A stretch of DNA of 64,000 nt. It comes from Vicugna vicugna. Its lineage: Eukaryota. A model generated the notes under the pieces. It was not told where the DNA came from and did no database searches. It saw nothing but the letters and a program-made list of their open reading frames with translations. Each line of letters starts with the position of its first letter. Positions within the stretch are counted from its first letter, which is position 1. Below are positions 14,506-38,184 of the stretch, piece after piece. The translations under genes and the position numbers were made by a program. The stretch is from NCBI GenBank assembly GCA_013265495.1, contig MU058883.1, forward strand, positions 614,596 to 678,595, in the 5' to 3' direction.

Positions 14506-14615
14506 GAGCAGGATGCTGCGCAGACAGGTCCCGGAAGAGGGCGGTGCTGTCCTGACCAGCGTGGTCCCCGGGCCAGAGAAGGGGGACTCCTACGGGAGCA
14601 TAGCCAGCCGCAGAG
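14506..14615 (+). pseudogene. ANO7: ANO7 exon 2 (start-codon exon), ATG at 14513
   Basis: cacag|GAGCAGG ATG; MLRRQVPEEGGAVLTSVVPGPEKGDSYGSIA versus human MLRRRAQEEDSTVLIDVSPPEAEKRGSYGSTA. 103 nt from the ATG versus 108 expected; inferred donor is gc. Confidence 0.75.
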
Positions 14616-15190
14616 GCAGCTACCCGCTGCCCGGCCCCCCGCCCTGCTGCCCAGCCCAGGCTCAGTCTGCTGTAGGTGTATGAAGGGGACACAGGGACCT
14701 GGGGACAGCGGCCCCTGCAACACCCACCGGGTCTTCCCTCCTGCTCCTCAGCAACCCCCAAACCCTCAGCTGCCCCAGCGATGGGAGAGGGGGTGTCCTT
14801 CACCCTCACTGTCGGGCCACCGCCCTGCGGGATGAGCAGAGATCCCCGGGACAGGCCAGATGAGGCCGCTCCAGGGAGGCCAGTGAGCCACCAGCAAGGG
14901 GAGACGCAAGGGGCTGCAGAGCAATGGATCAGTGCAACGTGTGTTGAAACAGTAATTCTTACAACACGACTACCTGTTCTGAGGGTTGAAAGGGCCCAGG
15001 GGCAGCAGGTGGGCCCGGGGAGGAGCAGGGACGCGGGCTGCACCCTCTGGGGTTGAGCGAGCACAGCAGAGAGGACTGGAGTCAGGTCTGGGTGGAGAGC
15101 GGGCACTGGCTGCGTCTGCTTCTCTGCTGCCTGCCAGGTCGTCAGCACACAGGTGATGGGGAGGGCCCGATCCCGGGGCAGATGCACGCA

Positions 15191-15345
15191 TCAGGGTCAG
15201 GGTCGGGGTCAGGGTGCGGGTTAATTGTAGACGGGCTAGAGAGGGTGAGGGTCAGCGCTATGGAAGGGTGAGGTTATGATGGGGTAGGTTTAGGCCAACG
15301 TAAGAGTCAGGGTCCAGGTTAGTGATGGGATGGGGGTTCGGGTCA
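15191..15345 (+). repeat. Degenerate telomere-variant hexamer tract (TCAGGG/TGAGGG/TTAGG) with a G4 motif
   Basis: tcagggtcagggtcggggtcagggtgcgggtta...gagggtgagggtcag...aagggtgaggttatgatggggtaggtttagg...tcagggtccaggttag. Confidence 0.7.
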
Positions 15346-16127
15346 CCCTGGGGCCCAGATGCCTTTTTAAAAGCGCTGGGGTGAGGGCACTAGGCCCAAC
15401 CTTGTCTCAGGCTCCAGCAGATCCCCAGGGCCCAGGGCAGCCACTGTGCGGCCCCAAGGATCCTGAAGGCCTCTGTCCGTGCCTCAGGCTCCCCCCAGTC
15501 AGCCTTGTCCCCAGGGTCAAACCCAGAGGAGGACACACCTCCTGGGGCCTGCAGAAAAGTCCCCACCTGCTGTGGGCCTTCTTTCCCCAAGTCCATCTCT
15601 AGGGGCTCCCCCCAATCCCTGGGGTCCACAGACACCCTAGGGGAGGCTGCTGGGGGAGATGCTGGGCCCCAGACCCCAGAGGCCCTGCTGCGGAGTGTCC
15701 TCTTGCCTGGTCTTCCTGGGCCCCCCTCTGCCTCCAGGGTGCTGCCCAGCCCCATGGCCTGAGAGTGGAAGGTGCCCCCCTCCCTGCCCCCCACAACACA
15801 GGTGCGATGAGCCTCAGAGAAACAGGCCTCACTCACCTGGAACGTCTAGAAACCGAAGGGTTCCACTTCCAGGGCCGTGACCACCTCTGGCCTGTCCGCA
15901 GGCACTGAGGGGCCGTCCAGCTCTTCTCCAGACTCTGGAGGCTGCACAGTGGGCACCCCTGGGTCCTGCCCAGGCTGCCTTCAGACCTAGCCCGGCCCAC
16001 AGCCCAGGCGGGGCGCTCGGCGGCCGTGGCAGCCCCTGGAGCAGCTGGAGAGGGCCCAGCTGGCCCCGCCCCCAAGCGTGTCTGCCCATGTGGCCAGACG
16101 CCACCACTCCTTGTCCCTTCCTTCCAG

Positions 16128-16185
16128 CCAGGTGGACACCAGGTGGCCGCCCACAAGGTGGGAAGCCCTGCCAAGCCCTGGATCA
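16128..16185 (+). pseudogene. ANO7: ANO7 exon 3
   Basis: ttccag|PGGHQVAAHKVGSPAKPWI|gtgacc versus human PGGQQAAACRAGSPAKPRI. 58 nt, frame intact. Confidence 0.85.
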
Positions 16186-16559
16186 GTGACCCCTCCCAGT
16201 ATCTGCCAGCTGTGCCCACGTTGGTGCTGGGGGTGGGGACACAGGTGGGGCGCCCACGGGTGGCAGGAGGACAGTGGCCCAGGTCACCGTCCTCAGTGAC
16301 CAGGCCTCCCCTTCCTCACCCAACGGCACCTCTTGAGCCAGCGCCAGCACCAGCTGCTGTGCTGGAGGATGGGGTGGGCAGGACACGCCCGGGAGACACA
16401 GGAAGGGGTTCCCCACAGACGGAGCGGCCCACCTCCTCACTCCCCAGCCCACTGCCCCGTCTGCCCCAAGCCACCGACATCTCCCCAGGGGCCTGCAGCC
16501 GCGCCCACCTGTGCTCCCCCTGGCCAATGCCACTCCCCACGCAGCACCAGGAAGACCCA

Positions 16560-16860
16560 TGTGAGAAGTAAACACCCCGAGCTCGAACCCACCAGGATGG
16601 TTGTTCTTTAAACAACCACAACAGCTACAAAAACAAAACAGAAAAGAGGTGCTGGTGAAGATGCAGAAAAATCGGGCCCCTCGTGCATTGCTGGCAGGAA
16701 CGCGGGTTGGTGCGGCTGCCGCGGAGGACAGCACGGTGGGTCCCCCAAAGTTAAGCCCAGAGCTGCCACGTGTGATCCAGCAATTCCACTTCTGGGTTTA
16801 TGATGGGCATTTGGGTTGTTTCCTTTTTTTGACTATTGTGATTAATGCAGCAATGAACTC
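16560..16860. mobile_element. L1 ORF2 3'-end fragments, plus strand (about 16560-16800) abutting minus strand (about 16801-16860)
   Basis: ggtgctggtgaagatgcagaaaaatcgg...gatccagcaattccacttctgggtt, then gatgggcatttgggttgtttcc...tattgtgattaatgcagcaatgaac. Confidence 0.65.
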
Positions 16861-16949
16861 ACATAGTTGTCCTTTCCACTCACTGTGTATTCGTCCTTCG
16901 TGGTCTGTGCATCCATCCTTGCACACCTGCACTTCCACCTGCAATTATG

Positions 16950-18420
16950 TCTTTCATGAAGAATTTCCTTTAGTGTTTCCAGTAGAGCAGATGTGCTGGG
17001 ACAAAATCCCTCAGATTTTGAAGGTTTGAGAATGTCTTCATTTAGCCTTCATTTCTGAAGAGCATTTCCACTGGACAAAGAATTCTAGTTTGCAGTATTT
17101 CCCCCAACACTTTAAAGACGTCAGTCCACTGTCTTGGCCGCCACTGTTTCAGTTGGGAAAGCCTGTGCCTATATTGTTATTGTGCCCCTGAAAAATAATG
17201 TGGTTTTTTTTTCCTCCTGCTGTTTTTTCCCATTTTATTTTTTATTGACGTGTAGTTGATGTACAATGATAGTTTCAGGTGCACAGCAAAGTGATTCAGT
17301 TGTGCAGATACGTACATACACACACTTTTTCTTTCGGATTCTTTCCCATTATAGGTTATTGAAAAATACTGAATTTAGTTCCCTGTGCTGTACAGGAGGT
17401 CCTTTTTGTTTATCATTTTACATACAGTAGTGTGTATCTGTTAATCCCAAACTCCTCATTTTTCCCTCCCCTCTTCCCCACTGGTAACCATAGTTTGTTC
17501 TCTATGTCCTCTAGACTATTTCTGGTTTGTAAATAAAATTTGTATCTTTTTTTAAGATTTCACGTGTAAGTGATATCATATGCTTCTTGTCTTTCCCTGT
17601 CTGACTTACTTCACTTAGAATGACAATCCCTAGGTCCAACCATCTTGCTGCAAATGGCGTGATTTCGTCTTTTTACGGCCGAGTGGTACTCCATTGTATA
17701 GACACACCACATCTTCTCTATGCGGTCATCTGTCGACGGGCACCGTCGAGGTGCTTCCATGTCTTGGCTGCTGTAGCTAGTGCTGCTTCTCCTGCTGTTT
17801 TTAAGATCTCGCCTTGTCTGTAACACAGCAAAGCTACGCTATACCATGGTTTTCCTACGTGTCAGTTTTTAAATCCTGTGTGGGGGTCATTGAGCATTTT
17901 GAGTCTTTGGATTGCTTTATTCCATCATTTGGAAACATTCGTGTTCACAGGTCGCGTCCTTCCTTCTCCCTCCTGGTTCTCAGGGCAGTCTGCTGGCCCT
18001 CTGACCGTGACCGCGACCGCCTTGCTCCCTGCTCTGCTCTTTCCATTCTTTTTCCTCTGAGCTTCACTTTCCTACTGGTCTAGCCTTAAGTTTGGCAGCC
18101 CTGTCTTCTGTTGAGTCTAGTCTATTATGAAACCTGTCCAACGAGTTCTTAATGTCATACGCTGTGTTCTGCTGTTTCAGAATGTTCGTTTGAACCCTTT
18201 TCATAAATTCTAATTCTCTCTTGAAATGTTCCAATTGTTACTCAGACCATTTCTTCCATTCTTTACTCCTTTTCCTCTTTTGACTTAATAACTGACATTA
18301 TTTATAGCCATCTTCTGCTGGCTGTATGGTTCATCTCTGGGTCTGCCTCTGCTCGTTCTGTGAACTTCCCATACAGTGTTGTTTTGTTCTGAAAGGCAGC
18401 CAGGTGACCGGCAGGTCGCC
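16950..18420 (-). mobile_element. Old L1M relic split by a younger L1 insertion
   Basis: tttgagaatgtcttcatttagccttcatttctgaagagcatttcc...ttgggaaagcc resumes after 17802 as ttaagatctcgccttgtct...tctagtctattatgaaacctgtccaacgagttc. Confidence 0.65.
17214..17802 (-). mobile_element. 5'-truncated L1 (about 560 bp) with a 14-bp target-site duplication
   Basis: TSD ctcctgctgttttt at 17214-17227 and 17789-17802, with a T-rich tail on the left. The minus-strand site reads TT/AAAAA. ORF 17611..17826 shows the ORF2 C-terminal motif KMWCVYTMEYHSAVK. Confidence 0.85.
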
Positions 18421-18820
18421 TGGGCCTGCTTGAGCTCGGTTCTGGGGGCTAGGACAGGCCCGCTTCAGCTCCGCGCTCCTTCCTAAGGCGCGTTTCTTCC
18501 TCTTATGGCACAGACTGTGCTCCTGGGGCACGGCCCGGGAGCCTCAGCTGGAAAGCCAGGGTGCGCAGCAGCCTCCCTCCTTTCTGTCTGGCCGCGGTTC
18601 CAGGGGGTCTCTGGTGTCCACCAGCCCCTTAGCTGCCTCAGTGTGTAAGCAAGCCAGGGCCCAGGGTTTCCTCACAGGCCTGTGGCTCTGGCCCCTCCAC
18701 GCCCCTCAAGCCCAGGGCCCTTCGCAGCCCCTAATTCTGACCACGCCTCCCCCAGCAATGCCTCTGCCCCTCTTGGGCTCCGTTGTCCTGCCCTGAAGTT
18801 TGGAAGATGCCCTTCAAGGG

Positions 18821-18938
18821 GAAGACCTGAGGTAGGGTCAGCAGCAGGACAGTGCCACCCTGGACAAGACGGGCGTGCAGGGGCGGGGGGGGCGCCTTCC
18901 TGGGTAAGCTGCCTGCGGCTGGGCTGCACGTGGAGCAG
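18821..18938 (+). pseudogene. ANO7: ANO7 exon 4 (3' part), containing a stop codon and a frameshift
   Basis: EDLR*GQQQDSATLDKTGVQ, then a frame change in the G-run at 18881-18893 to AFLGKLPAAGLHVEQ, versus human EDLKLDRQQDSAARDRTDMH..TFLDNLRAAGLCVDQ. TAG at 18833-18835, donor gcacgt. The 5' part (DFVLVW) is not recognisable. Confidence 0.85.
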
Positions 18939-19748
18939 GCACGTGGGGCTGGTTGTAGGCCCTGGCTCTGCACTCGTTCAGTGATTTGTGACCTTGCCCC
19001 ACAGGGCCTGAGGGTGTGGCGTCCAGAGCCTTGCAACAGATCAAGCCCCAGAGTCCTGCGGGGGGCCTCCTCCCTGAGCCCCCTACAGCTGCGGAACCAC
19101 TGACCGCAGGCCAGGTTATCTCCTCCTGCCGAAGCAGGCATCTGGCCCAGGACGGTCAGGGAACCCCTGAGGCTGAGAATCACTGATTTGGGAAGCAGGT
19201 GCACACAGAGAGACAGCAGACCCTGGAAATGAAAATTCCCCCTCTGGGCTCCGGGAGAGCCTGTCACGTCTGCACACGTGTGCACTGCCATGCCCACCCA
19301 CATCTGCACAGTCATGTGCTCACTTCTATCACATGTGCGTAACGCCCCCGGATACCTGGTGGCTTGTCGAAGGCCGAGACGCTGTTCACTGAAGCAGCTG
19401 GGTTTACTTCCCACTGAGGTCAGCGTGCTGCAGGCACCGGCGGGGGCGGGGGGCAGCTGGCAGCCTCGCGGTGTCTGTCTGTCCCTCCTTGGCTGACTTC
19501 CAAACAGGAGCAGCCCTGACAGTCGACTTCCTGGAGCAGGACCACAGAAGGAACTTGTCATTCATCAGATAGTTTAAAACCAGTGCTGGTCAGTTGCCAC
19601 CGTGGCTATAGGAAGCCTCTCTTCCTGAGTGTGAAAGGACACACACTCACATGTGCACACAAGTTCATAAAGATGACCACACCTGCGCACACACGCATGT
19701 GCAAGCCCACGTGTGCCCCAGGCTCTCACAGAGCCCCTGTCCCCGCAG

Positions 19749-19856
19749 CGTGACGTCCAGGATGAGGAGAGCGCGGTGCACTACCTCCTCCTCGGCGCCC
19801 CCGGTCCGTGCTCTGCTGTTGGCGCAGAGGACCTGCGTCTGCAGCTGCCCCTGCAG
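19749..19856 (+). pseudogene. ANO7: ANO7 exon 5 (net in frame, with an internal -1/+1 pair)
   Basis: ccgcag|RDVQDEESAVHYLLLGAPGPCSAVGAEDLRLQLPLQ|gtacc. 108 nt, the same as human. Confidence 0.9.
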
Positions 19857-20528
19857 GTACCTGGGGCCTTGTGGCGGGCAGAGAGAGGGCCTGGAGGTGC
19901 TCCCAGGAGCCAGGGTCCCTCGTGACTGCACCCCGTGTCCCAGTGCCACTGCCAGTGCTGGGAAGCCCGGGGCCCCCACTCCGTCTCTGCTCCCCCCAGC
20001 ACACGGCGCACCAAGAAGCCTCGCTGGCAAGTCAGATGAGGGGTGGCACCCGTGGTGGCTCGGGGAGGGGGGAGCAGTGCGGCAGCCAAGGCTCTGAGCT
20101 GACCACCTGGACCCCTCCAGGCGCAGACCCCCTCCAGGCCGCCCCCTGAGGGCCAGCTTTGCAGACAGGGGACACGGGGTGGAGGGGCTGCAGCTCCCGG
20201 CTGAACTCAGGATGGCAGGCTCAGGGCAGCTCTGCACCCAGTCTGTGGGCTCCCTTGGCCCAGCATGGCCTGGGGCTGGACAAAGAGACAGTCACCACCC
20301 CTTTGTCCCTTCTGCCATGAGAGGTTCTGGGCCTCAAACTGACCAGCAGAGCAGCCCTAGAGTCTGAGGCCCAGAGAGGGGAAGGGGCTTGCCTGGTCTC
20401 CCCACAGGGTCTGTAGCATGGCCCGGGGAGGGCGGTGCTGTTCCCTCGGCTGGAGCCCTTTCTCCCATTGCCCTGTTTGCAAACCCGCACACCCAACCCC
20501 ACCGCATGGCGTCCGTGTCCCCTTCCAG

Positions 20529-20665
20529 GAGCTGCCCAGCCAGGCCTCCAACTGGATGGCCAGCCCACTGGAGCAGCTGGGCGTCTCCAACATCCTTCTG
20601 GAGGAAGTGCCTGACGTGTCCCCCGAGTCCTACTCCTGCCAGTTCACAGCCAGTAAGCTGTCCAG
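20529..20665 (+). pseudogene. ANO7: ANO7 exon 6 (frame intact)
   Basis: ttccag|ELPSQASNWMASPLEQLGVSNILLEEVPDVSPESYSCQFTASKLS-R|gtgag. 137 nt. Confidence 0.92.
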
Positions 20666-21583: not shown

Positions 21584-21642
21584 GGTCCTCGGCAGTGGCG
21601 ACCTGGACGCCTTCTTCCCCAGCACCTGCAAGGCACCACATT
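21584..21642 (+). pseudogene. ANO7: ANO7 exon 7 (+1 frameshift)
   Basis: VLGSGDLDAFFPST, then RHHI in a shifted frame, versus FLGSDNQDTFFTSTKRHQI. 59 nt versus 58. Confidence 0.85.
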
Positions 21643-22469
21643 GTGAGCAGGGTCCTGCCGTAAGCCCCGCGCCCTGACCCAGGCCTGAAAGGCTGCAGCC
21701 CCAGAAACTCTGCCCCCCGGGAGCAGAGGCCCCCGTGGATACAGGAAGACCTTTCTGCATACTGACCAGAGGGACAGTGTCCCCGGCCGGAGACCCCAAG
21801 GTGGGGCCAGAGGCTCAGAGGCCACCCCTCCTCTCTCCACAAGGGGAGCACATCCCCAGGCTGCAAAGGCAGAGCTGGCCCGCGCTTCTCGGGGACCCCA
21901 GGGACCCAGTTGGGTCTCACATTCAAGGGTTTGTGGGACAGACAGCCAAGACTGCTGGGCCAGAGGGCGGGGGGCCCTGTTGGCCAGTGAGGCAGGGAGC
22001 CAAGGGCCAGAGCAGACCAGCAACTGCAGCGGCCTGAGAGGGGCGGGCAGAGCTGGGCCCCCCGGGGGCCTGTGCTGGGGCAGCGGCTGGGATGGGACTG
22101 CCCAGCAGAACCGGCTGCTGACAACCGAAGGCCCAGGCCACGTGGGCTGCCCCTCAGGGGCCAGGCCCCCCCAAGACAGGCCTCCAGGTGGAGGCTGACC
22201 CCTGCCCAGACCGAGGGTCCATGCAGAGTGGGCTGCGCTTGGCCAGGGCATGGGTTCAAACCCAGACATGACTGCCGTGAGCCAAGGCCTCCCGTCTACA
22301 AAGAGGGGTCGTGCCATGTGGGCCGGTGACATGAGCAGGACCTGGGTGTGTCTTCACCGCTGTCACCAGGGGCCCCAAGAGGCCACCCGTGGGCTGAGTC
22401 CCAAGACAGGAGGGCCAGGATGTCCCTGCCCCGCTGTCCTGTGACTGGTGCCTTCCCCACCACCCGCAG

Positions 22470-22580
22470 CTGTTTGAGATCCTGGCCAAGACCCCCTACG
22501 GCCACAAGAAAAAAGGCTTGCTTGGGATCGACCAGCTGCTGGGGGAGGCTGTCTTCAGCGCAGCCCTCCCCCTGCATGAC
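22470..22580 (+). pseudogene. ANO7: ANO7 exon 8 (donor GT>AT)
   Basis: ccgcag|LFEILAKTPYGHKKKGLLGIDQLLGEAVFSAALPLHD|atgaat. Confidence 0.92.
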
Positions 22581-23557
22581 ATGAATCCTGGGGCCGGAGG
22601 GGCCCAGCTGGGTTGGGGCGGGAGGCTCAGGCTGCCGCCAGAGGGTGAGTGTCTGGATGAGGAGGATCCCAGGTCCTGCCCAGGCATGTGAGGCAGCGGG
22701 CCCTGCCCTCCCACGACGGCAGCTGTGGTCAGCAGCACCCCTGTGCATGACTGGGCCCGGTGTGGCCTGCGGCGCGCCCACCACGGGCCCAGTCTCCCTG
22801 GGCGGCTTCCCTCTCAGGGAGGAGGGGGAGGTCTCATGTGCCTGTCACATAGCGAGGTAAACCGAGGCATCGCCAGGGAGGGGTGCTCACCTCGCCAGCG
22901 GCCACAGTACCAGACTCGTCAGCCTTACCATCACCCCTGACAAAATGTCCCCCCTCTGGGTCTGGAGGCTGTTGACTCCCCGCCCCTGCAGCCGCCCACC
23001 ATGAGGCCCTCAGAGTTGCAGGGAGGGGCGACGGGGCCTAAGGGCCCCAGGTCAGTCCCCCACCCACTGCTGTGTGACCCTGAGATGCCACCGAGGGGTC
23101 AGTGAGGGCGTGCACAGGGAGTGGCCCAGTGCCCACGCCCGGCACCCCCTCACCCAGGGGCATGCTCTCCCTGCTGGCCGGGGCCGGGACGGCCTGCCCC
23201 ACTGGCCTGGCCATGGCCAGGGACTGCCAGATCCCTGCCCGGAGACACGGATCCCACTGACCACAGCCACCAGCTCCTCCCAGGGCCGCCCTCCAGGCCC
23301 CTCCACTGCCCTGGACCTGGAACCTGGGAGCCCCAGGCCAGGGGGCTTAACACAGATGTGCGCTCCTCAGAGGGGCCTTCCTGGATGCCAGCCCCCAGCG
23401 TGACCCTTTTGTCCTCAGCAGTCCTGAGTCCCGGGGTTTGTCTGGCCGTCTGCCCACAGTGGGGGTGCTGAAGCCCCCAGACCTAGAATAGCGTCTGGTG
23501 GGGGAGGATGCCCGGACCATCCTGGGATCTCCCTGCCCGATGGCTTCTCATCCCCAG

Positions 23558-23722
23558 GGCCCCTTGGTGGTGCCCCTAGAGAGTCCGCGGGCTCTGGGCC
23601 TCAGCCAGCAGCAGGTGCTGCTCCAGCGCTGGGCCCGCGGGCACCAGTGGAACGAGTACCAGCCTCTGGACCAGGTGCGCCGGTGCCCGGGGAGAAGACG
23701 GCTGCCCCTTTCACCTGGCTCG
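23558..23722 (+). pseudogene. ANO7: ANO7 exon 9 (-1 frameshift near 23688)
   Basis: GPLVVPLESPRALGLSQQQVLLQRWARGHQWNEYQPLDQVRRC, then GEKTAAPFTWL in a shifted frame. 165 nt versus 166. Confidence 0.9.
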
Positions 23723-25157
23723 GTGAGTCCCGTGCCCCTCAGGGACTTCTGGGCCCCAGCTTGGTCTTCTGGGTAACAGTCTGCTAACCGATGTCCCCAG
23801 GAGGGGAGCCATGCATGGGGCTCAGCCACTGGCCACACCAACCCCTCCTAGGCCAGCGTGCCCTGGCCGAACCCTGCTTCTGCCCAGCCGTCTGGCCTCA
23901 GTAAGGTACCCGAGCACTGTGACCATTTGGGGCCCTCGTAAGGCTCTGGTGCGGGTCTGGGAACCCCTTTCTGCAAGCAAGAGCCCCTTTCAACCCCAGT
24001 CCTCAATGTCCCTGGTCCAGCAGACATGTCCAGTGAAGTCCTGGGCCACCCCAGGAACTCCTGGCACAGCGGTCACCCTGCCCAAGGCCCAGGGGCCCAC
24101 TGTCTCCCCTCCTCCAGACAGGTTGGCACCTCTGGGATGGCCATCTGCCCTGGGCAGCCCCAGGCTCCTTGCTTTCCTCACAGCCTCCACCTCCCCCGAG
24201 TTCTGTGCCCTAGTCACCTGAAGTCCTGTCTTGCCCCCAAAGACAGCAAGTGTGCCTGCCCCCCCGGGCCTGTGCACTCATGCTGCGCACATCTCCGTTC
24301 AAACTGTGAGCCGTGTCAGGGTGCTGTGCGAGGCAGGGGGTCCTGCCTTTGTGGAGTGTCCCAGCTCTGGGTGACACAGAAAGGGAGGCCATCCACAACT
24401 GCTGTGGACCTGGACGGGGTCGGGGGCTGCCACGCAGGGTGCGCAGGGCCAGAGCACTGATGCCCAAGGCACAGCCCACGTGCACAAGGACCTGGGGCTC
24501 CTTCCTGGGGCCGAGGAGGAGCAGGGCCCCGGGACAGCAAGGCCAGGTGCAGGCCATGGATGGCCGATGGGTGGGGTCCTTGGCTGGGTTCTAGACAGAC
24601 TTGCATTTTATAGAAGTCACTGGCCAATGCAGGGGAGACAGGACACCAGGCTGGGATGGACCTGGGCTAGACCTTTGGGAGGCAGACAGGGTGCACACTT
24701 GAGGGACTGGGGGGCACCTTAGGACCTGGCCATGGTGGGGCTGGGTGCAGAGCCGGAGGCATCCAGAATGACCCCCAGGCTCCCAGAACTGGGAATGGGT
24801 GGGCGATATGCCTGTCAAAGAGGGGACACCCACCCCAGGAGTTGGTTGGAGGCAGATAGGGCTCAGGAAAGGGGTGTCCAGGGGGCAGGAAGCACCTGGG
24901 TAGAGCCCTTGGGCTTGGTGCCCAGGTCAGCATGGTGGGAGGGCCAGAGGCCAGGAGCGAGGAGTTGTACCCAGAGCTGCCAGGGGACACCCCTGAGGAC
25001 CGGTCCCCTCAGTTTCCTCCTAGAAGACTCAGCATTGGCTGAGTGTGCTCCCTGGAGGAGAAATGTGGCTGTGGAGACCCCCACCTCAGGCTCAGCCCAG
25101 CACTGGGGGCACGGGCCACCAGGTCCCTGACAGCTGACCCCAGTGCCCCCTCTGCAG

Positions 25158-25253
25158 GGCTCTGCCCAGGCTGGCTCCTGCCAGCAGCAGTGGTGGGCAC
25201 ACTGGTGTGGTGTTCCTGGCGGGCTGTTTCGTGGTGTTCTCAGGCACACCTAC
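25158..25253 (+). pseudogene. ANO7: ANO7 exon 10 (TM1; +5 duplication; donor GT>CT)
   Basis: GWLLPAAVVGTLV, TGGTG duplicated at 25203-25212, then VFLAGCFVVFSGTPT|ctaagt. Confidence 0.9.
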
Positions 25254-25707
25254 CTAAGTGTCCTCTCCCCTTCGGCTCCCAGGCCTCCCCGGTGTCTCCT
25301 GAGGTGGGTGTGCAGGCCCTGTGCAGAGCTGGGGCCGGAGGTGCACACTGAGCACACCCCTGCCCACAGGGTGGCACGGGGGCCCTGTGGACTTGGCTGG
25401 AAGGCTGGTAGGTAGACCGGCTGTTCCCAAGCGGACACGGGGGACAGGTGTGCCCCCGGACTGACAGGGGCACAGCTGTACTCGCAGGCTCGTGTCACTG
25501 GCACTCGTCCTTGCTTCTCACAATGGTGTCAGCTTTTTTGATAAAGAAATGGCTGGCTTGCGTTTTACCCTATTGTGGAGCTGAAACTTCCAAAAGTGAC
25601 CTAAAAGTCATCATGGTGCACATCTTTAAAAGAAGTGCTGGGGCGGGAGAGGGCAAGGGGAGGGCAGGCCCTCCATGGCGCCCACAGCACGCCCCCACCG
25701 CCCTGAG

Positions 25708-25803
25708 GCAGGAGCTGTGTGGCAGCAGGGCAGCGTCAAGATGTGCCTGCTCTGCCATGATTGCCCTTTCTGGCTGCTCTCCAGCGCCTGTGCCCTGGTC
25801 CAG
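25708..25803 (+). pseudogene. ANO7: ANO7 exon 11 (-1 frameshift; gag acceptor, gc donor)
   Basis: QELCGSR, shift near 25730, then SVKMCLLCHDCPFWLLSSACALVQ versus QELCGSKDSFEMCPLCLDCPFWLLSSACALAQ. Confidence 0.9.
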
Positions 25804-26269
25804 GCACGAGGGGGCCAAAGTGAGAGCGGCAGCTCCCCCGGGTTGGGTCCTGCCCTGCCTGCACCCCCAGCTCGGTCCCTGTCAAAGGCAAGCCCCTGTG
25901 AGTGACGTAACCCCCACGGCACCATGCCCCCCCAACCCCGGGCCACGACTGGCCAGCACGGCGCGGCGCTCAGCGGAGGGCCTGCGCCGGGAGACGCCCG
26001 CTCCTCACTCTCACTATGACTGTGCTATTGCGTGTGGCTGGCCAAGGTCAGCTGGGGGCCCAGGGCAGGCAGACCTCTCGGGCACAGACGGGCTGCGCAG
26101 AGCTCCCAACTCAAGAGGCCGGGACGGGCGGCTCCCTGGAGTCCTTGAGCCCCGTGCACCGCGCGGTGTGTCGTCGTCTCCAGCGGCCTTGCCAGCATGC
26201 CCCACACACAGGCCTGGAGCCCTGCTGCCAGGACAGACCCACAGACAGACGCCCCCCTGCCGCACTCCT

Positions 26270-27000
26270 GGGGACCTAGGCCTGCTGTAACACATTGTCA
26301 CAAAAGGGGGGCCCTAGCACAACAAAGCGGTTCCCTCACAATTCTGAAGGTCAGAGTCTAACACTGAGGTGGTGTCAGGGCTGGTTTCTTCTGGAAAACC
26401 GGGTCCGTGACGCCCCCTGGTTCCTGGTCGCTGCCAGGAATCCTCCTGTTCCCTGGTCCGGGGCTGCATCACTCCCACTGCTGCCTCCATCTTCGTGTGG
26501 CCCCTCCCTCGACGTGTCTCTGTGTCTGTTTCCTCTTCTGTGTCATTGGTTTTCGACCCTCCCCTAATCCAGGGTGTGCTCATCTAGAGAGCCTTATCCT
26601 AATTACACATGCAGAGGCCCTCCTTCCAAATAGCATTATATTCTGAGGTCCCAGGTGGACGCATCTTTGGGGAGCCCATAATTCAATTCACTACAGTCCA
26701 CCCTCTGGCCCCCAAAACTTCATATCCATCCATGTGCAAAATACATTCACCCCCAACCCAGTGTCCCTGAAGTCTCACCCACTGCAGCATCAACTCTAAG
26801 TCCAAAATCTCACCTAGATACCGACAACTCAAAAGTCTCAAATTTCATCTGCATCATCTAAGTCAGGTGCGGGTGGGACTGGCTATGGGCCCTCCTGGGG
26901 CGACATCTTCTCTACCTGTGCTAGGGAACAAGTCACCTGCTGCCGAAACACAATGATGGGCAGACACAGACCAGGCGGGGCCATCCCTAAAGGGAGGACA
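26270..27000 (-). mobile_element. ERVL-MaLR MLT1 3' LTR (about 26270-26695) plus the end of the internal region (26696 to about 27000)
   Basis: On the minus strand the LTR starts TGTAGTGAATTGAATTATGGGCTCCCC at 26695, preceded by a purine-rich agagggtggac. MLT1-like body ggctgcatcactcccactgctgcctccatcttc. Confidence 0.75.
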
Positions 27001-27066
27001 GGGAGGGAGTGCAGGGGCCACCAGCCCCAAATGAGCCAGAACCCCCCCTCCCCGCCCCGCCCGCAG

Positions 27067-27214
27067 GCTGGCCAGCCCTTGGACCACCACCATGGTGGCA
27101 CCGTCTTCTTCAGCCTGTTCATGGCGCTGTGGGCCGTGTCCTCTTGGGATGCTGGAGTGCAAGAGCACCATGCAGGCCCACCCCTGGGGCTGCTCCAACC
27201 GTGAGGACATCGTG
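27067..27214 (+). pseudogene. ANO7: ANO7 exon 12 (TM2; +6 and -2 indels)
   Basis: AGQPLDHHHGGTVFFSLFMALWAV, then a shift to KSTMQAHPWGCSNREDIV|gtgggt. 148 nt versus 144. Confidence 0.9.
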
Positions 27215-27273
27215 GTGGGTGGTCTGGTCGCTCACGGAGCGCGCACCCCCGCTGAGCACTGGCTTCCCTCCAG

Positions 27274-27410
27274 GAGAGGCCGTGGCCTCAGGTGGCCGCC
27301 TCAGCTCCCACAACAGCCCTGAGCCCCACCGCCGGTGAGGACGAGCCCTACTTCCCCAAGAGGAGCCGCCTGTGCTGGTGCTGGCCGGCTCCGTGGTGGT
27401 CATGACGATG
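27274..27410 (+). pseudogene. ANO7: ANO7 exon 13 (-1 frameshift near 27376)
   Basis: ERPWPQVAASAPTTALSPTAGEDEPYFPKRSRLC, shift, VLAGSVVVMTM|gtgag. 137 nt versus 138. Confidence 0.9.
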
Positions 27411-28080
27411 GTGAGGGGTCGCCACTGCCCTCCCCGCCCCCCATGCCTCTGTCCTCCTGAGCCTCAGGGGTCAGCTTGTGTCCTCCTTCCCATCCTCCTC
27501 ATGCTTCCTCTGGGAGCCACAAGACCCTTGCTGTCACCAGAAGGGCCCCCGTTACCTGGGCTCCAGGGAGGGGGAAAAGCCTGCAGCCAAGTTAGGGGTC
27601 CGGGTGGTAAGAGGTGGGTGTGTGTTGGACAGGGGCCTCTGGGAAGGCTTCTCCAGCTGTGGGCTTGGGCATCCTTCAAGATGGGGGGGCAATCCCAGCA
27701 CAGGGGCCCCTCACACCCTGCCTTGCCCTCCAGCCCTAGAGGCTTCCTAACTGACCCACTCCCTCCCCTTCCAAGATGTCAGGAATTCCCCGTTTGGGGC
27801 TGGTGAGCCAGTGGGGTGGGTTCTCTAGCACCTGGGGCTAACAATGCACAGGGGCCCTTTGACACCCAAATGTTGCCCATCTCTAATTCTAAATGACCAC
27901 CCTTCCCCACCTCTCCCTGCCCACCATGCTGCACTGGCCCGCAACCCCAGCAAGAGGAGGCACGGAGCACAGCCTGGTCTAGACACGCAGCAGTGGTGGT
28001 ACTGCTGTGGGGGCTGTGGCCTGAGGGTGCTGGGGTGCCAGGACAGCAGCACGGCGGCTCAGGCATCTGGCTGCCCGCAG

Positions 28081-28179
28081 GTGGCCGTGATGGTCATGTG
28101 CCTGGTGTCCGTCATCCTGTACAGGGCCATCCTGGCCATCCTGGTGTCCAGGTCAAACAACACGCTCCTCGCAGCCTGG
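28081..28179 (+). pseudogene. ANO7: ANO7 exon 14 (intact)
   Basis: ccgcag|VAVMVMCLVSVILYRAILAILVSRSNNTLLAAW|gtgagc. Confidence 0.93.
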
Positions 28180-28269: not shown

Positions 28270-28378
28270 TCGTCATGCATCACCAGCCTCATGGGGTCCA
28301 TCCTGAACCTCATCTTCACCCTCATCCTCTCCAAGACCTATGTGGCCGTGGCCCTGGCCCATGTCCTGACAAAATGGG
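28270..28378 (+). pseudogene. ANO7: ANO7 exon 15 (+6 in-frame duplication)
   Basis: SSCITSLMGSILNLIFTLILSKTYVAVALAHVLTKW-E; GTGGCC duplicated at 28342-28353. Confidence 0.9.
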
Positions 28379-29127: not shown

Positions 29128-29869
29128 TTCTTGAAAGAATTTCTTTTTTTTTTCTCTGTGATTTATCATAACATTTTGTGTATATTTCCCTGTGCTATAC
29201 AGTGTAATCTTGTTTATCTATTCTACAATTTTGAAATCCCAGTCTATCCCTTCCCACCCTCTACTCTACTGGTAACCACAAGTCTGTATTCTCTGTCCAT
29301 GAGTCTTTAGATTCCACATATGAGCGATCTCATATGGTATTTTTCTTTCTCTTTCTGGCTTACTTCACTTAGAATGACATTCTCTAGGAGCATCCATGTT
29401 GCTGCAAATGGCGTTATGTTGTCGGTTTTTATGGCTGAGTAGTATTCCATTGTATAAATATACCACTTCTTCTTTATCCAGTCACCTATTGATGGACATT
29501 TAGGCTGTTTCCATGTTTTGGCTATTGTAAATAGTGCTGCTATGAACATTGGAGTGCAGGTGTCATCCTGAAGTAGATTTCCTTCTGGATACAAGCCCAG
29601 GAGTGGGATTCCTGGGTCATATGGTAAGNNNNNNNNNNNNNNNNNNNNNNNNNNNNNNNNNNNNNNNNNNNNNNNNNNNNNNNNNNNNNNNNNNNNNNNN
29701 NNNNNNNNNNNNNNNNNNNNNNNNNNNNNNNNNNNNNNNNNNNNNNNNNNNNNNNNNNNNNNNNNNNNGGCCATTCTGACTGGTGTGAGGTGATACCTCA
29801 TTGTAGTTTTGATTTGCATTTCTCTGATAATTAGTGATATTGAGCATTTTTTCTTGAAAGAATTTCTTT
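29128..29869 (-). mobile_element. Young 5'-truncated camelid-type L1 with a perfect 19-bp target-site duplication
   Basis: TSD ttcttgaaagaatttcttt at 29128-29146 and 29851-29869. ORF 29307..29819 is the L1 ORF2p C-terminus ([17 protein letters not shown]...CTPMFIAALFTIAKTWKQPKCPS...WYIYTMEYYSAIK). Confidence 0.92.
29629..29768. other. Assembly gap (140 N) inside the L1
   Basis: Run of n characters. Confidence 1.
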
Positions 29870-29941
29870 AGAATATCCGGACCTTTTCCCCATCTCTGCA
29901 TGGGTGAGGTGGTCTTACGACGGGATCCCGCTGTGCCACAG

Positions 29942-30041
29942 AGATGCATCGGACCCAGACCAAGTTCGAGGACGCCTTCCCCCTCAAGGTGTTCATCAAC
30001 TCCTGCTCCTGGCCCATCTGCATCGCCTTCTGCAAGGGCAG
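29942..30041 (+). pseudogene. ANO7: ANO7 exon 16 (12-nt in-frame deletion of FQFV)
   Basis: ccacag|(E)MHRTQTKFEDAFPLKVFI----NSCSWPICIAFCKG-R|gtcagc. Confidence 0.92.
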
Positions 30042-30357: not shown

Positions 30358-30412
30358 GTTCGTGGGCTATCCGGGCAACGGCCACATCCTGCTTGGGGTC
30401 CGCAACCAGGCG
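30358..30412 (+). pseudogene. ANO7: ANO7 exon 17 (intact)
   Basis: ccccag|(R)FVGYPGNGHILLGVRNQA|gtgagc. Confidence 0.92.
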
Positions 30413-32030: not shown

Positions 32031-32128
32031 TGTGTAGCTGGAGGCTGCCTCATTGAGTTGGCACAGGAACTCCTGGTCATCACAGTGGGCAAGCAGATCA
32101 TCAACAACGTGCAGGAGATTCTTGTTCC
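32031..32128 (+). pseudogene. ANO7: ANO7 exon 18 (TM6; intact)
   Basis: ctgcag|CVAGGCLIELAQELLVITVGKQIINNVQEILV-P|gtgaat. Confidence 0.93.
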
Positions 32129-33219
32129 GTGAATCACCCACCCCACCCCACTCTGGGAAGCATCCAGGGACTGTGGGACCCGGGAGTGTCTGGGGCAGCA
32201 GCCCCAGTCCAGCCCCAGCTGGGAGAAGAGGTTGGACAGAAGGAAGGTCTGGCCCCTCGTGGACCTCAGCGACTCATGTGCAATGTAGGGGAGGCTCTGC
32301 CCCAGCCACCTGCCCCGCAGGATCTATGATGCCCCCACACTACAGAGTTGCTGCAGACACTTACTGAGTTCTCTCGCCCCGGGGATAACTTTGGAGGGGA
32401 GGAAGCCTGGGTTCCTGGGCCCTGTCCCATCCATGCCAGTCCATCCTGTCTGCAGCCTGCTGTGGATGGACCATCGAGTTTTTTGGCCCCAGCACAACAC
32501 TAGAGGGAGGAGCAAGGGGAGGCCCCTGGTTTCACCTGCCCTAACAGAAATACCCAGACCACTGGGGTCCCAACTCCCCAGTGCCACCCACTGGCACCAC
32601 TGTGGCCCCAGTCAAGGCAACTAGGACCCTGTCCTAGGCCAGAGCCTTCAATGGCCTGCCCAGGCGTGGTTTCTTATCTGGCCGGAGGCTGGATGCCCTC
32701 CACCATCTCTCTCCACACCTGATCTCCCGTGATGGCAGCTCCTTGGCGACTCCCCGGGGGAACCTCAGACGGTAGCTGTGGGACCTTGGCCAAGCCATGT
32801 GCCCTCACTGGGCATGGCCCTGACTCTCAGAGCAGGTGGTGTTGGGAAGCTGAGTTCAGGATTCCAAAGTGCAGGGTGTCGCTGGACGAGCGGCAGCATG
32901 GGGAAGCAATACCATGAGCCCCACTGTCCTCATCTACTCCCTTCCTCCCTCCCTCCCAAGCTTGACGCAGCTCTTGACACCTCTTTGCAGTTTCCAGGAG
33001 GGATCAGTTGTCCCCAGATCTCCTGTGAGTGAGGCAGACTTTCCTGAGGGCACTGCAGGGTTGCTGGGGGAGGTGATGCCCCAGAGGGCCGAAGCGTCGC
33101 CCCTCGCTCTGCCTGCCCAGTGGCCCCAGGCCCTCCTCCTCCTGGTGCCCTTTACTTGCAGGGTGCCCAGGACCTGACTTGTTAGAACGGGGGCATTTCC
33201 CTGGGTGCTCTGTCTCCAG

Positions 33220-33365
33220 GAAGCTAGAGGACTGGTGGCAGAAATTCTGGCTCCGCTCCAAGAAGAGGAGGGTGGGGGCTTCCATGGTGGCTGGCCAGGT
33301 GCCCTGGGAGGCGGACTACAAACTTCTACCCTGCGAGGACCTGTTTGACGAATATCTAGGGATGG
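33220..33365 (+). pseudogene. ANO7: ANO7 exon 19 (frame intact; EYLEM>EYLGM)
   Basis: KLEDWWQKFWLRSKKRRVGASMVAGQVPWEADYKLLPCEDLFDEYLGM|gtagg. Confidence 0.93.
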
Positions 33366-34648
33366 GTAGGCGCCCTAGTGGTGGCGGCAGCCGTGGCTAT
33401 CACCGTGGGTGGGAGGGGCAGCCACACACCCGAAAGGCTTTCAGCCTCAGCATTCCTGTCTTCATCTACCTTGAAGCATGATTGTAGGGGTGAGCATGAC
33501 AGAGGTTCCCTGGTGGAGTAAGGCCCACAAAGATCAGGAAAGGAGTTGAGGAGGCCAGAGTGGGGAGTGCTCAAGAAAGGTTGGCTGAGGGCAGGAAGGG
33601 GCAGCACCCTGGGCACAAGGGTTTGGAAAAAGACCTGGGGCCAGTTGATGGGGCTTTCTTGCAGTGGCCTTAATCTCCCCTACCCAGGAAAGCCTGGGCC
33701 AGAGCCTCCTGTAGGGAGTGAGAAGTGGGGTGCTCAGGCCCTGGGGGCTAAGGAACCCCGAGAGGCAAGGCTACACCTGGGAGGCGATAGGCCTGGGGAG
33801 CTGATATTCTCTAGACAGTTTCTCGATGCCCACACTCTTGGCTGACCCTCAGCACGTGTTCTTGCCAGGTAGGGGCTGTTCCCCACATGGGGCAATTGCA
33901 CTTTTTGAGGGCAGGGTCTGTGCCCAGTGTAGACACCAGTCCCTGCAGCCAGGGTCTTACTCTTCGATAACAGAGGAGAAAGAATGCTGGCACACTCTTA
34001 ATCTGAAGGGCTGCACCTAAGCCAATGCATTGCTCTGAGCTCCCTGGCAGCCAAAGCAAAAAGGGTGACAGTAGCTGCATTGTTCTATGGATGACAGGGG
34101 GCAGAAGAGTTCACAAGGGAGACACACGCTTTTCCATGATAACGTGCATAGGGTGGACCTTGTGTCTCCACTCCATTGGACAACAGGCAATGGGACCTGA
34201 TGTTTTCCTTAGGAATTTTACGTCCTTTCAAGGAGCCATTTCCTAAAATCAGCCCTAATGTCGGAAGCAGGTTCTGTTGTCGCTCCTGCCAGGAGCCCAC
34301 AGGGTGGGCCAAGCACCGGAGAGGACAGTTACATAAGGAGGCTGAATGTCCAGCCAGAAACGCATCCAGCTCTGTGAGAGCAGTCAGGGGAGGCTTCCTG
34401 AGGGAAGGGGCCCTGCAGCTGAGTCTGCAGGAGTGACCAGAGGCTGGGACCCTGCTGATGGGCAGGGGTGCTCCCAAGGGCTCCCGGAAAAGCGATGTCA
34501 GGGTTTACGGCGGGCACTGTTGGCCATCGGTTGCAGGCGCGGGTGGCCCTTACCACCAGCTGAAACCGGGCGGGCAGGAGTCATGGTTCGCGGGCCGCGG
34601 CCGGCGGAGGGTCCTGGCGGTGGGTGACACTGTTCGCGTCCGCCGCAG

Positions 34649-34810
34649 CGCTGCAGCTCGGCTTCATCACCATCTTCGTGGCCGCCCGCCCGCTCGCGCC
34701 GCTCTTCGCTCCGCTCAACAACTGGGTGGACGCGCTCAGGTTCGTCTGCGAGCGCCGGCGTCTGGGTTCACGTCCTGGCGGGCGTCACGCACCTGGCGGT
34801 CACCGGCAAC
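34649..34810 (+). pseudogene. ANO7: ANO7 exon 20 (TM7-8; 12-nt and 32-nt deletions)
   Basis: LQLGFITIFVAARPLAPLFAPLNNWV----DALRFVCERRR, a 32-nt gap at 34760/34761, then WVHVLAGVTHLAVTGN|gtgag. 162 nt versus 206. Confidence 0.92.
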
Positions 34811-34903
34811 GTGAGCGCGCTGGGGCGGGGTCCGGCGACGGGGCGGGGCCCGGCGACTGCGCGGGGTCGGGCGGGGAGGGGCGCTGGCCCGCCGACCGCC
34901 CAG

Positions 34904-35044
34904 GCCTCCCTGCCGGCCTTGTTGTGCGACTTCCCGCCGCGCGCCCCCTCCGGCCGGACCAGCGCCCGCGCCCTGCGCCGCTGCGTCGGGTTCACGCTGG
35001 CGCGCGCCCGGCCGCCCTCGCGGCCGCGCACACGCCGCGTGCAG
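34904..35044 (+). pseudogene. ANO7: ANO7 exon 21 (-2 frameshift; donor GT>GG)
   Basis: ASLPALLCDFPPRAPSGRTSARALRRCVGFTLARA versus AFLLAFSSDFLPRAYYRWTRAHDLRGFLNFTLARA. Ends TGC AG|gggagg. Confidence 0.85.
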
Positions 35045-35299
35045 GGGAGGCGAGGCACAGCCTGCGCGGCCCCCGCCCCTTTCCCGCCTCGGGGACCCCG
35101 CCGTGCGGGGACCCCGGGGACCGCGGTGGTGCGGGTAGGGGCCGTGAGTACCAGCCCCGTTCTTTTCATGGGTCCAGGCTTCTTTCCTTTTCCTGTTTCT
35201 TTCCGAGTCAGTTCTGGTACTTACTTCTCGCAGAAGACTGTTTCAAATGAGCTTTAGGGCGCAGTGACACAAACGTGCGCGTCATGCTCTCACGATTTT

Positions 35300-36930
35300 C
35301 TTAGGCTCTCCTGTTCTTGTAGCTGTGGCCCTACTTTCTTTCCAGATAGTTTCTATCCTTTCTTTCCTCTTAAAAAGCAATTTTCTGGAGTTGACTCATT
35401 TGTTTTCAGACTTTCTTGGGCTTTAATAAACAAATTTTTGTCTATACATTTATTTGAATGTACTGCTTAAAACCTCCGTTCCACTTAATACTTCTTTCCT
35501 TTACTTCTGAAATATTTCATCACTCCAATTGTGATTTGCCTATTTATCCATTAATTATTTAGAAGACTAAGTTCTCAAACAGGTGGAGTTTCTCCTTTTT
35601 GCTACTTAAAACACCATTAATGTAGGAATCTTTATATCTGACCTTAATGACATTTCAGCTATAAATCCTTACCTTTCTGATTGGCTCTGAGATCATTTTT
35701 ATATCAAATTTCCACTTCTAGATCATTCTTGGTAAATTGTATCCTTGTTTTGACTCATCCGTGTCCTCTAGTTTTAAAATATTTGTGATTTACATTGTAT
35801 TTTTTTTTACCCTAGAGAACAGTTATTTACCATCAGAATAATTAATCTATGATAGTCATGAAAATGTTAGTGTTTAATTCCTGGTGTTACATGAGTCACT
35901 GAAGAATGAATCATTAAAAGATTTTCAACTTGGAAAACACTGATATGCTACCAAAAAAAATCATTGACTTTGGTCTGAATTACTTGGGGGGAGAGGGGGG
36001 AGTTGATGTGATGTAAGTCTCTCATTCGATGAGTCTTCCTTTATGATCTGGTCACAATAGACTTTTGCATGTTTCAGGTGAGCTTAGGATCTTTATTGAT
36101 TTTGGAGCAAGGTTCTACACATATCCACTACGTCAGCCTTCTTAATTTTAACTTTACTATTAGAAAAACACACCAAAACATTTTCAGCCATTTGTGAATC
36201 CCAACTCTTTGGTATATTTTATTAACGTCTGTGGCTACACTAGCTTCTTAGGCATTGCTGTCCCTCTGGGTTCGTTTTTCTTCTTTCTGAAGTTGATCCT
36301 TTAGTAGCTCTTACAGGAATGTTGTGGCTGGTGAACTCACATGTATGTTCGTTTTTACATGTCTGAAAATATTTCCATCTTTGTTCTCCAAGTAGCAGGT
36401 ATGAAATTCTGGGTTAAGGGATATTTTCCCTAGGCTCCTTCTAAATATTACTCTTTTGTGACCTGGCTTTTCTTGCCAGAGGCATTTGTAGCATTTAAGT
36501 TTTTTCTCATTTCCTTTGATCCGCATCACCAACAGATTCGGTTCTTTTCAGAAGTTTCTCGCTGAGACTCAATGTGCTGTTGCTCTGGAGTGATTTCTTC
36601 TTTTGTTCTAGAAACAACTCATTTTATTCCTTCAAACATGCTTCTCCACACTCCCTTCCAGCCTCCCTTCCAGAAGTCCCTGTCTGCTGGGGCCTCCTCA
36701 TGTCTCCACCTGTCTGGAGTGCTTTTGCCTTTTGATCTCTGTGACCCTCTGTGCATGCAGGGCGACTTCATGACTGTCCCCGGCTCCCATGGTGCTCTGC
36801 TGTGTCTAGTTAGCCACTTAAAGTTTACCCTGCTTGCTGAGGAGTTTTTCTCAATGATGGTATTTTTTATTTTCAAGATTTTTTGTTTTTTTCTTTTCTT
36901 GCAAACTTGGTCCCGGTAATGCTCTCCAAG
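35300..36930 (-). mobile_element. AT-rich old L1-derived block (antisense)
   Basis: ttcttctttctgaagttgatcctttagtagctcttacagg...tgtctgaaaatatttccatc resembles the antisense L1M ORF1-ORF2 spacer. The left part is less certain. Confidence 0.5.
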
Positions 36931-37388
36931 GAGTGCAACGTGTAAGTATATGGCACAAAATGGAACGTCACACCTTCCTGCAACACGGACAGCAGCAAAG
37001 CCCAATGTCACGCTGTGACAGTTGGGCAGCTCCCTGGGCGGGCGGGTGGGCAGTGTCTGGCAGAGTGGCCGCTGGTCCCGTGAAGGCACACTTTCATGGT
37101 TTAAGTGGGTTGACATTACCTGTTGGAGCACGGACTTATGGGACTGTCACACCTACCAGATAATGAGGCGTTTGCCACTGTGGGGCTCAGTTACAGTCCA
37201 GCCCATCTACCTGTTTGAAACCCCAACAAGGTAAAGCTGAAGGTGCTGTCAGAGCAGCCTGTTTGGGAACATTGTCCACTTCACACACCCTCAGTGGTGA
37301 GCCAGGCCCAGAATCTCAGGACGGGTGAGGGAGGCGGCGAGGAAGCTGAGAGGCGCATCTGGCGCCCGGAGCCCCACGTCCCCTGCAG

Positions 37389-37461
37389 GTGCCAGGCTTC
37401 CAGGGAGGATGCGGGACACCGCTCCCCAGCCGTCTGCCTGGCCTTCGTCATCGTGTGTGAG
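37389..37461 (+). pseudogene. ANO7: ANO7 exon 22 (18-nt in-frame deletion)
   Basis: ctgcag|(R)CQASREDAGHRSP------AVCLAFVIVCE|gtacc versus YRAFRDDDGHYSQTYWNLLAIRLAFVIVFE. Confidence 0.85.
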
Positions 37462-37920
37462 GTACCGAGGCACCTCTCAGCTCTTCCGCCGATGTCCCCC
37501 ACTGGCGCTCTTGGCCTCAGCGCGGTGGTCCCCACGCCCACAGTGCTTTGCCTGACCTCGCCGTGTGGTGTGTGGGGGTCGGCATGACCAAGGGCGCGGG
37601 GCCCAGTGCTGACCGTTCTGCCACCTGGGTCAGCTCACAGTTCTTTGCATGTTCATTTCCCTGCTGGCCTCTGTCGCCCACTGTGTGGACATCAGAATGC
37701 TCTGGGCACTGCAGAGCGTCCCACTGGAGCTGGGGTGGTCTCTGGCCAGTCTCTGGCCATGGCCTCTGCCTCTCCCAGGAGTTTCCTTTTCTGCACTGAT
37801 GCTTGCTGTCCAGCTCAGCCCACACCTGGGGAGCAGGTGCCCACCCCTGGCCCCATGAAGGCCACTCAGGCACTTGTTTTGCCCAGGGGTGGGGGTGCCC
37901 TCTCCCACCACTCACACCAG

Positions 37921-38035
37921 CCCTGCTCCCGCCAGCCGGGTCCTCGACCTTGTGGTCCCCGACATCCCTGAGTCTGTGGAGATCGAGGTGAAATGGGAGT
38001 GCTGCTTGGCCGAGCAGGCGCTGGCCGGGAATGAG
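37921..38035 (+). pseudogene. ANO7: ANO7 exon 23 (5' end about 5 nt short)
   Basis: ASRVLDLVVPDIPESVEIEVKWECCLAEQALAGNE|gtgag. The nearest cag acceptor gives 115 nt versus 120. Confidence 0.85.
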
Positions 38036-38133
38036 GTGAGTGCCGACCCCAGCCTGGCGCCCTGCTGCCGTCCCGAGGGAGTGAGGAGTCCGTCCAACCA
38101 CTCTCCTCCTCCTCTGCCCTTTCCTGGAAACAG

Positions 38134-38184
38134 GCTCTTTTTGGACCAGACGGAGGCGAAGTGGACCAGCCCTCAGGCTCAGAG
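38134..38184 (+). pseudogene. ANO7: ANO7 exon 24 (intact)
   Basis: aaacag|ALFGPDGGEVDQPSGSE|gtgagt versus VLFGTNGTKDEQPEGSE. Confidence 0.8.

Follow-up and report, generated by a model that had tools for sequence, protein, structure and literature searches.

We analysed a stretch of 64,000 nucleotides (nt) of the genome of Vicugna vicugna (contig MU058883.1 of assembly GCA_013265495.1, positions 614,596 to 678,595 of the forward strand). This whole stretch is called the window below, and positions are counted from its first letter. Between the genes PPP1R7 and HDLBP, it carries the exons of ANO7 (TMEM16G/NGEP), the gene for anoctamin-7, in a heavily damaged state. Human ANO7 encodes a prostate-enriched antigen and is among the genes linked to the risk of aggressive prostate cancer. 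Proposals for the molecular role of the protein include those of a channel, of a scramblase and of a protein of cell contacts.

The ANO7 locus and its exons

Several searches point to the identity of the gene. Translations of the + strand exons match the Pfam domains Anoct_dimer (PF16178, E 6.7e-6) and Anoctamin (PF04547, E 1.4e-8, plus weaker pieces). In line with this, a tblastn comparison with six intact mammalian ANO7 proteins gave collinear matches from 14.5 to 38.2 kilobases (kb), with a stop codon and frame switches falling within exons. We also searched the 61-residue translation of one exon (22398-22580) against 1.8 billion representative proteins, and every named full-length relative returned, for this query and for its relatives, was an anoctamin-7. 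At the DNA level, the individual exons are 70-92% identical to those of hippopotamus and black rhinoceros ANO7. The G+C content of the locus is 60-68%.

The exon boundaries were taken from the intact ANO7 of these two species (protein P0082 on locus L002 for the hippopotamus, P0083 on L003 for the black rhinoceros). Both reference proteins were placed exactly onto their own loci by a script, all junctions being AG/GT in both. The lengths of the 22 coding exons are the same in the two species: 112, 58, 143, 108, 137, 58, 111, 166, 91, 97, 144 and 138 nt for C1 to C12, and 99, 103, 112, 55, 98, 146, 206, 143, 91 and 120 nt for C13 to C22. Each exon was then located with its flanks in the window and in two camels, Camelus dromedarius (L001) and C. 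ferus (L004), aligned with MAFFT, and scored in the ancestral reading frame. The analysis was repeated with the hippopotamus as the reference. As a control, the same procedure applied to hippopotamus against rhinoceros over C1-C22 gave no indel, no stop codon and only AG/GT junctions, which shows that the method of calling lesions does not invent them.

All 22 coding exons were found in the window, at 14506-38035 on the + strand and collinear with the two references. The order PPP1R7 (+), ANO7 (+), HDLBP (-) is common to the window, the dromedary and C. ferus. All the introns have been kept, with lengths similar to those of the dromedary, so the locus is not a processed (retrotransposed) copy. 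We name the exon with the ATG codon C1, so that exon n of an earlier first-pass annotation of this DNA, made from its letters, corresponds to C(n-1). That annotation had counted 23 collinear exons; we map 22 against hippopotamus and rhinoceros, followed by a weak similarity to the C-terminal tail (38107-38190). The hippopotamus model has an extra terminal exon, C23 (window 39808-39987), which has no counterpart in the rhinoceros and was left out of the ancestral gene. This segment also resembles the last exon of an artefactual dromedary model described below, lies near the 3' end of HDLBP, and is doubtful as a real ANO7 exon. The features of the window are listed in Table 1.

Table 1. Coordinates and state of the ANO7 exons and of the other features of the window. 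Lesions called shared are those also present in Camelus.
Feature	Coordinates	Strand	State and remarks
C1 (ATG at 14513)	14506..14615	+	2-nt deletion after 14607, window lineage only; donor 14616 GC, shared
C2 (58 nt)	16128..16185	+	no lesion, AG/GT
C3	18794..18938	+	acceptor AG lost (CC); 5' end scrambled with +4; in-frame TAG 18833; donor 18939 GC; all shared
C3, 1-nt deletions	after 18879; after 18883	+	the first shared, the second window only
C4	19749..19856	+	-1 after 19802 and +1 at 19821, compensating; frame shifted over 18 nt; shared
C5 (137 nt)	20529..20665	+	no lesion
C6	21584..21642	+	+1 at 21630, shared
C7 (Anoct_dimer piece)	22470..22580	+	frame intact; donor 22581 AT, window lineage only; GT in Camelus
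C8	23558..23722	+	1-nt deletion after 23688, shared; Camelus with its own TAG in C8
C9	25158..25253	+	5-nt insertion 25203-25207, shared; donor 25254 CT, AT in Camelus
C10	25708..25803	+	1-nt deletion after 25730, window only; donor 25804 GC, shared
C11	27067..27214	+	+6 at 27081-27086; 1-nt deletions after 27140 and 27155; all shared
C12	27274..27410	+	1-nt deletion after 27377, shared
C13 (99 nt)	28081..28179	+	no lesion
C14	28270..28378	+	in-frame +6 at 28341-28346, window only
C15	29942..30041	+	in-frame deletion of 12 nt after 29995, shared; a transmembrane stretch thereby loses 4 residues
C16 (55 nt)	30358..30412	+	no lesion in window; dromedary donor GG
C17 (98 nt)	32031..32128	+	no lesion in window; Camelus with +1 and AT donor
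C18 (146 nt)	33220..33365	+	no lesion in window; Camelus with its own TAG
C19 (Anoctamin core)	34649..34810	+	12-nt deletion after 34726 and 32-nt deletion after 34755, net -44; both shared with dromedary
C20	34904..35044	+	1-nt deletions after 35006 and 35031; donor 35045 GG
C21	37389..37461	+	in-frame 18-nt deletion after 37425, shared
C22	37929..38035	+	17-nt deletion, window only: acceptor AG and first 13 nt of exon gone; donor GT kept
Possible terminal coding exon (C-terminal tail, poorly conserved), weakly similar	38107..38190	+	46% identity over 26-30 residues to gorilla, elephant and mouse proteins
PPP1R7 exon, upstream neighbour	9635..9805	+	intact; 100% identity over 57 residues to the PPP1R7 part of C. 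ferus model P0005; Pfam LRR_9
HDLBP (vigilin) KH-domain exons, convergent downstream neighbour	43307..62125	-	clean frames; Pfam
Lineage-specific insertion (704 nt) in intron C14/C15	29147..29850	.	encloses the gap 29629-29768; absent from dromedary; flanking duplication of about 19 nt

Lesions and their sharing with camels

Six of the 22 exons are clean in the window (C2, C5, C13, C16, C17 and C18). In each of the other 16 there is a frameshift, a stop codon, a splice site that has been destroyed, or a deletion that affects conserved transmembrane sequence. In total, we count 11 frameshifted exons, one in-frame stop, six non-GT donors and two lost acceptors (C3 and C22). The alignment to hippopotamus and rhinoceros thus recovers all 11 frameshifted exons of the first-pass annotation (C1, C3, C6, C8-C12, C19, C20 and C22), its six non-GT donors (14616 GC, 18939 GC, 22581 AT, 25254 CT, 25804 GC and 35045 GG) and its TAG at 18833, which does lie in the ancestral reading frame. 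The position of the second C20 indel is slightly different in the hippopotamus-based alignment. To these lesions we add the loss of the C3 acceptor, the compensated -1/+1 pair of C4, and the in-frame indels of C11 (+6), C14 (+6), C15 (-12), C19 (-12) and C21 (-18). The C19 deletion takes out the residues E-I-R-L of a conserved NNW-V-EIRLD stretch, which we take to supply an acidic calcium ligand on helix 8 of the TMEM16 structures.

A conceptual mRNA joined at the ancestral boundaries has its first stop at codon 66 and eight stops in all. If the exons were spliced at their ancestral sites, the frame would be lost within the first coding exon and translation would meet a stop at that codon. No full-length anoctamin can come from this locus. 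With functional mammalian ANO7, as in hippopotamus and rhinoceros, the locus has in common the neighbourhood, the 22-exon layout, the exon lengths and phases, and the Pfam domains; it differs in that 16 of its 22 exons are damaged, the frame is lost from C1 and the E-I-R-L of C19 is deleted.

Most of the lesions are also found in the camels. Base for base, Camelus dromedarius and C. ferus have the TAG, four of the splice lesions and about 15 of the indels (some 20 lesions overall). The splice lesions common to all three are the GC donors of C1, C3 and C10 and the loss of the C3 acceptor. The TAG, the +4 and the first deletion of C3 stand at the same positions in all three. The other common indels are the C4 pair, C6 +1, C8 -1, C9 +5, the three of C11, C12 -1, C15 -12 and C21 -18. 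The C19 deletions are seen as shared in the dromedary only, C. ferus having gaps there. Each lineage also has lesions of its own: private to Camelus are the TAGs in C8 and C18, the GG donor of C16 and, in C17, an AT donor and a +1, and the window alone has C1 -2, the second C3 deletion, the AT donor of C7, C10 -1, C14 +6 and C22 -17. Such a pattern is expected if decay went on in each lineage after a common death of the gene.

Since dromedary and C. ferus have most of the lesions in identical form, ANO7 was inactivated before the split between Camelini and Lamini, and the last ancestor that all living camelids have in common already carried a dead gene. This ancestor of camels and llamas lived about 16-25 million years ago. 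The old, lineage-level loss at the orthologous locus that the first-pass annotation had proposed is thereby borne out, and its timing sharpened by the shared lesions.

Protein models have been built at this locus in the camel genomes. A GenBank entry, 'Anoctamin-7 [Camelus dromedarius]' (P0007), was the best match of the exon query described above. Placed on the window, it runs along shifted frames and intron sequence, with a protein identity of about 83-96% per piece. Together with the 95.9% identity of intron DNA to the dromedary, this marks the window as the DNA of a camelid outside Camelus and points to the group of llama and alpaca. The C. ferus 'hypothetical protein' P0005, a PPP1R7-ANO7 fusion, is likewise stitched from shifted frames and intron sequence. 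Both models are 41-52% identical to other, real ANO7 proteins. Judged from these alignments, they are annotation artefacts of a broken gene, and the 'Anoctamin-7' models of dromedary and wild Bactrian camel are unfit for alignments or trees. In addition, the identity of the dromedary counterpart of C20 (L001 22370-22511) falls to about 50% with both the window and the outgroups, against 97% in the intron that flanks it; a local replacement, an expansion of low complexity or an assembly error in the dromedary record could account for this.

Age of the loss and competing explanations

The former exons have drifted at the rate of introns since the camel/llama split. Between the window and the dromedary, identity is 95.6% in the exons (2373 sites) and 95.9% in the introns (17804 sites), and gap events occur 3.8 times per kb of exon and 3.5 times per kb of intron. 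We also estimated the ratio of nonsynonymous to synonymous substitution rates (dN/dS) by the Nei-Gojobori method. It is 0.19 between hippopotamus and rhinoceros, 0.24 on the hippopotamus branch and 0.21 on the rhinoceros branch. On the camelid branch, with changes assigned by parsimony, it reaches 0.80 for the window and 0.71 for the dromedary. The comparison of branch dN/dS suggested in the first-pass annotation therefore sets 0.71-0.80 in camelids against about 0.2 in the outgroups.

Taking a dN/dS of about 0.2 for a functional gene and of 1 for a neutral one, roughly three quarters of the camelid branch would have gone by without constraint, a crude figure. The approximately 15 shared indel events in 2.46 kb of exon correspond to about 3.5 times the indel rate of introns in a single lineage since the camel/llama split. 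Because dN/dS and the indel density on the stem agree, inactivation probably belongs to the early part of the camelid stem, roughly 40-60 million years ago, although both dating estimates are crude, given the small counts, the pairwise methods and a CpG-rich sequence.

Taken together, these data make it very probable that 14506-38190 on the + strand is the orthologous, intron-containing remnant of ANO7, an old unitary pseudogene. Some observations weigh against this reading. The GC donors of C1, C3 and C10 can in principle function. The dN/dS between the window and Camelus is 0.5-0.7 and not 1, which we would attribute, as a supposition, to small counts and to the CpG richness of synonymous sites. 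Outside 22-28 kb, the lesions private to the window (C1 -2, the second C3 -1, C14 +6, C20 and C22 -17) are seen in the present assembly only. Finally, three RNA runs (X18-X20, from reproductive-tract and 'mammal metagenome' samples) carry 6-9% of the sampled words of 22-28 kb.

Could the gene be intact, and the lesions be errors of sequencing or assembly in a GC-rich region? The composition of the locus, and an assembly gap within it, would speak for such errors. However, about 20 identical lesions in three independently produced assemblies, two of them the independently sequenced Camelus genomes, show that assembly error is not their source. The sequence itself also recurs in sequencing runs: 17 runs of DNA or unknown kind (14 samples from 7 studies, a second species label included) contain 93-99% of the sampled 31-mers of 22000-28000, and in five runs from three samples the sampled words of 27067-27410, where four of the indels lie, are present to 100%. 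Exon and intron divergence is equal, and the HDLBP KH exons and the PPP1R7 exon with its leucine-rich repeat read clean, as the first-pass annotation had remarked when arguing that assembly noise was improbable. We thus give this explanation practically no weight. It is also very unlikely that the locus is a decayed duplicate and that a functional ANO7 lies elsewhere in camelid genomes. The remnant occupies the ancestral slot between PPP1R7 and HDLBP with all its introns, and the matches listed for hippopotamus ANO7 include orthologues of lizards, turtles and birds, and no intact camelid ANO7. More broadly, a search of 5.8 billion proteins brought up no intact ANO7 of a camelid, and the 'ANO7' protein models that exist for camelids are solely those built on the broken locus. 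From these searches we infer that camelids probably have no functional ANO7 anywhere in their genome.

A remaining explanation is that the locus keeps a function, through a short N-terminal product similar to the human short NGEP isoform, or through a non-coding RNA. In its favour, the ATG survives, Camelus has an undamaged C1 and C2, and the 6-9% of words of 22-28 kb noted above come from RNA contigs of reproductive-tract samples. Yet C1 has a 2-nt deletion in the window, the C3 acceptor is lost and followed by the TAG in all three camelids, the exons evolve no slower than the introns, and no indexed RNA run contains C11-C12 (27067-27410). A retained function is, in our view, likewise very unlikely. 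We also considered a fully spliced transcript as the source of the 6-9%, the exon-internal words of C7-C12 making up about 9.6% of 22-28 kb, and dropped it because 27067-27410 is in no RNA run. Some residual transcription of the pseudogene is possible.

ANO7 in other lineages and meaning of the loss

We compared the ANO7 locus of the humpback whale (L005, exons at approximately 2007-28635, one assembly; model P0157, labelled 'LOW QUALITY PROTEIN' by NCBI) with that of the hippopotamus. C1 has two 1-nt deletions, C3 is unalignable, C5 has -1/+1/-1, C10 has -13 and C18 has -13/+4. The acceptors of C13 and C14 read GG in place of AG. The humpback whale is hence another artiodactyl with frameshifts and lost acceptors in this gene, but its lesions are not those of camelids: no indel or acceptor loss matches, and the GC donor of C1 alone recurs. 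Because the hippopotamus has GT at this site, we take the common GC donor as a probable homoplasy and regard humpback ANO7 as a candidate independent pseudogene.

Among the 120 orthologues listed for hippopotamus ANO7, there is none from cattle, sheep, goat, deer or pig, and the cetacean entries are only the 'LOW QUALITY PROTEIN' of the humpback whale and a partial narwhal model. In a literature search over 8 million papers, ANO7 and cattle occurred together in two, in neither of them with ANO7 as a bovine gene, and no paper paired it with Sus scrofa. Two ANO7-like 'metaclust' proteins (P0107 and P0155) are not camelid. At the PPP1R7 locus of the gray whale (L006), no ANO7 exon was seen within 10 kb downstream, and what matches the ANO7 locus of the humpback whale is limited to repeats; a gene model of 566 residues, with no Pfam match, fills the space downstream of PPP1R7.

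Given the humpback loss and the lack of ruminant or pig ANO7 proteins in these searches, the loss of ANO7 does not look specific to camelids. A recurrent loss in Artiodactyla, with separate events on the camelid stem and among baleen whales and perhaps others in ruminants and pigs, and with an intact and constrained copy in the hippopotamus, is a tentative idea that we consider less probable than its negation. If it were true, some shared biology, e.g., the physiology of accessory sex glands or of the gut epithelium, would have made ANO7 dispensable repeatedly. The first-pass annotation had speculated on a link with camelid seminal biology (semen, induced ovulation). We found no support for this link, and it is weakened by the independently broken humpback gene and by the lack of a ruminant or pig ANO7 protein among those found.

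Outside mammals, decay of ANO7 has been suggested in some birds (oscines and galliforms), where it was inferred from missing models (PMC6679542). In both cases, synteny is kept and ANO7 is inferred to have become a pseudogene. They differ in what is left, as the birds have traces of a few 3' exons whereas the camelid window has every exon present and its lesions mapped. Our literature search returned no report of a loss of ANO7 in a mammal, and no paper pairing ANO7 with alpaca or dromedary. It is probable that large gene-loss screens already include this locus in their classifications and pass over it in their text.

The remnant is in kind an ordinary unitary pseudogene, and its value is moderate, since lineage-specific pseudogenes are common. 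It would nonetheless mean that the camelid family has done without ANO7 over tens of millions of years, and that in this setting neither male fertility nor viability depends on the gene. ANO7 has been listed as a marker of the seminal vesicle (PMC12197640). Camelids would thus be natural ANO7 knockouts for comparative work on prostate and seminal plasma.

Finally, the assembly gap within the locus is a single run of N (29629-29768) in the intron between C14, which ends at 28378, and C15, which starts at 29942. These exons are adjacent in both reference genes, hence no exon is hidden in the gap, and it does not bear on the conclusion that the gene is a pseudogene. The gap lies within the insertion listed in Table 1 (29147-29850), which contains, on the - strand, a reading frame that we take, from its peptide, to be LINE-1 ORF2-like; this frame beside the gap had no match in Pfam. 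Judged by its sequence and its absence from the dromedary, the insertion looks like a young retroposon of the llama-side lineage.

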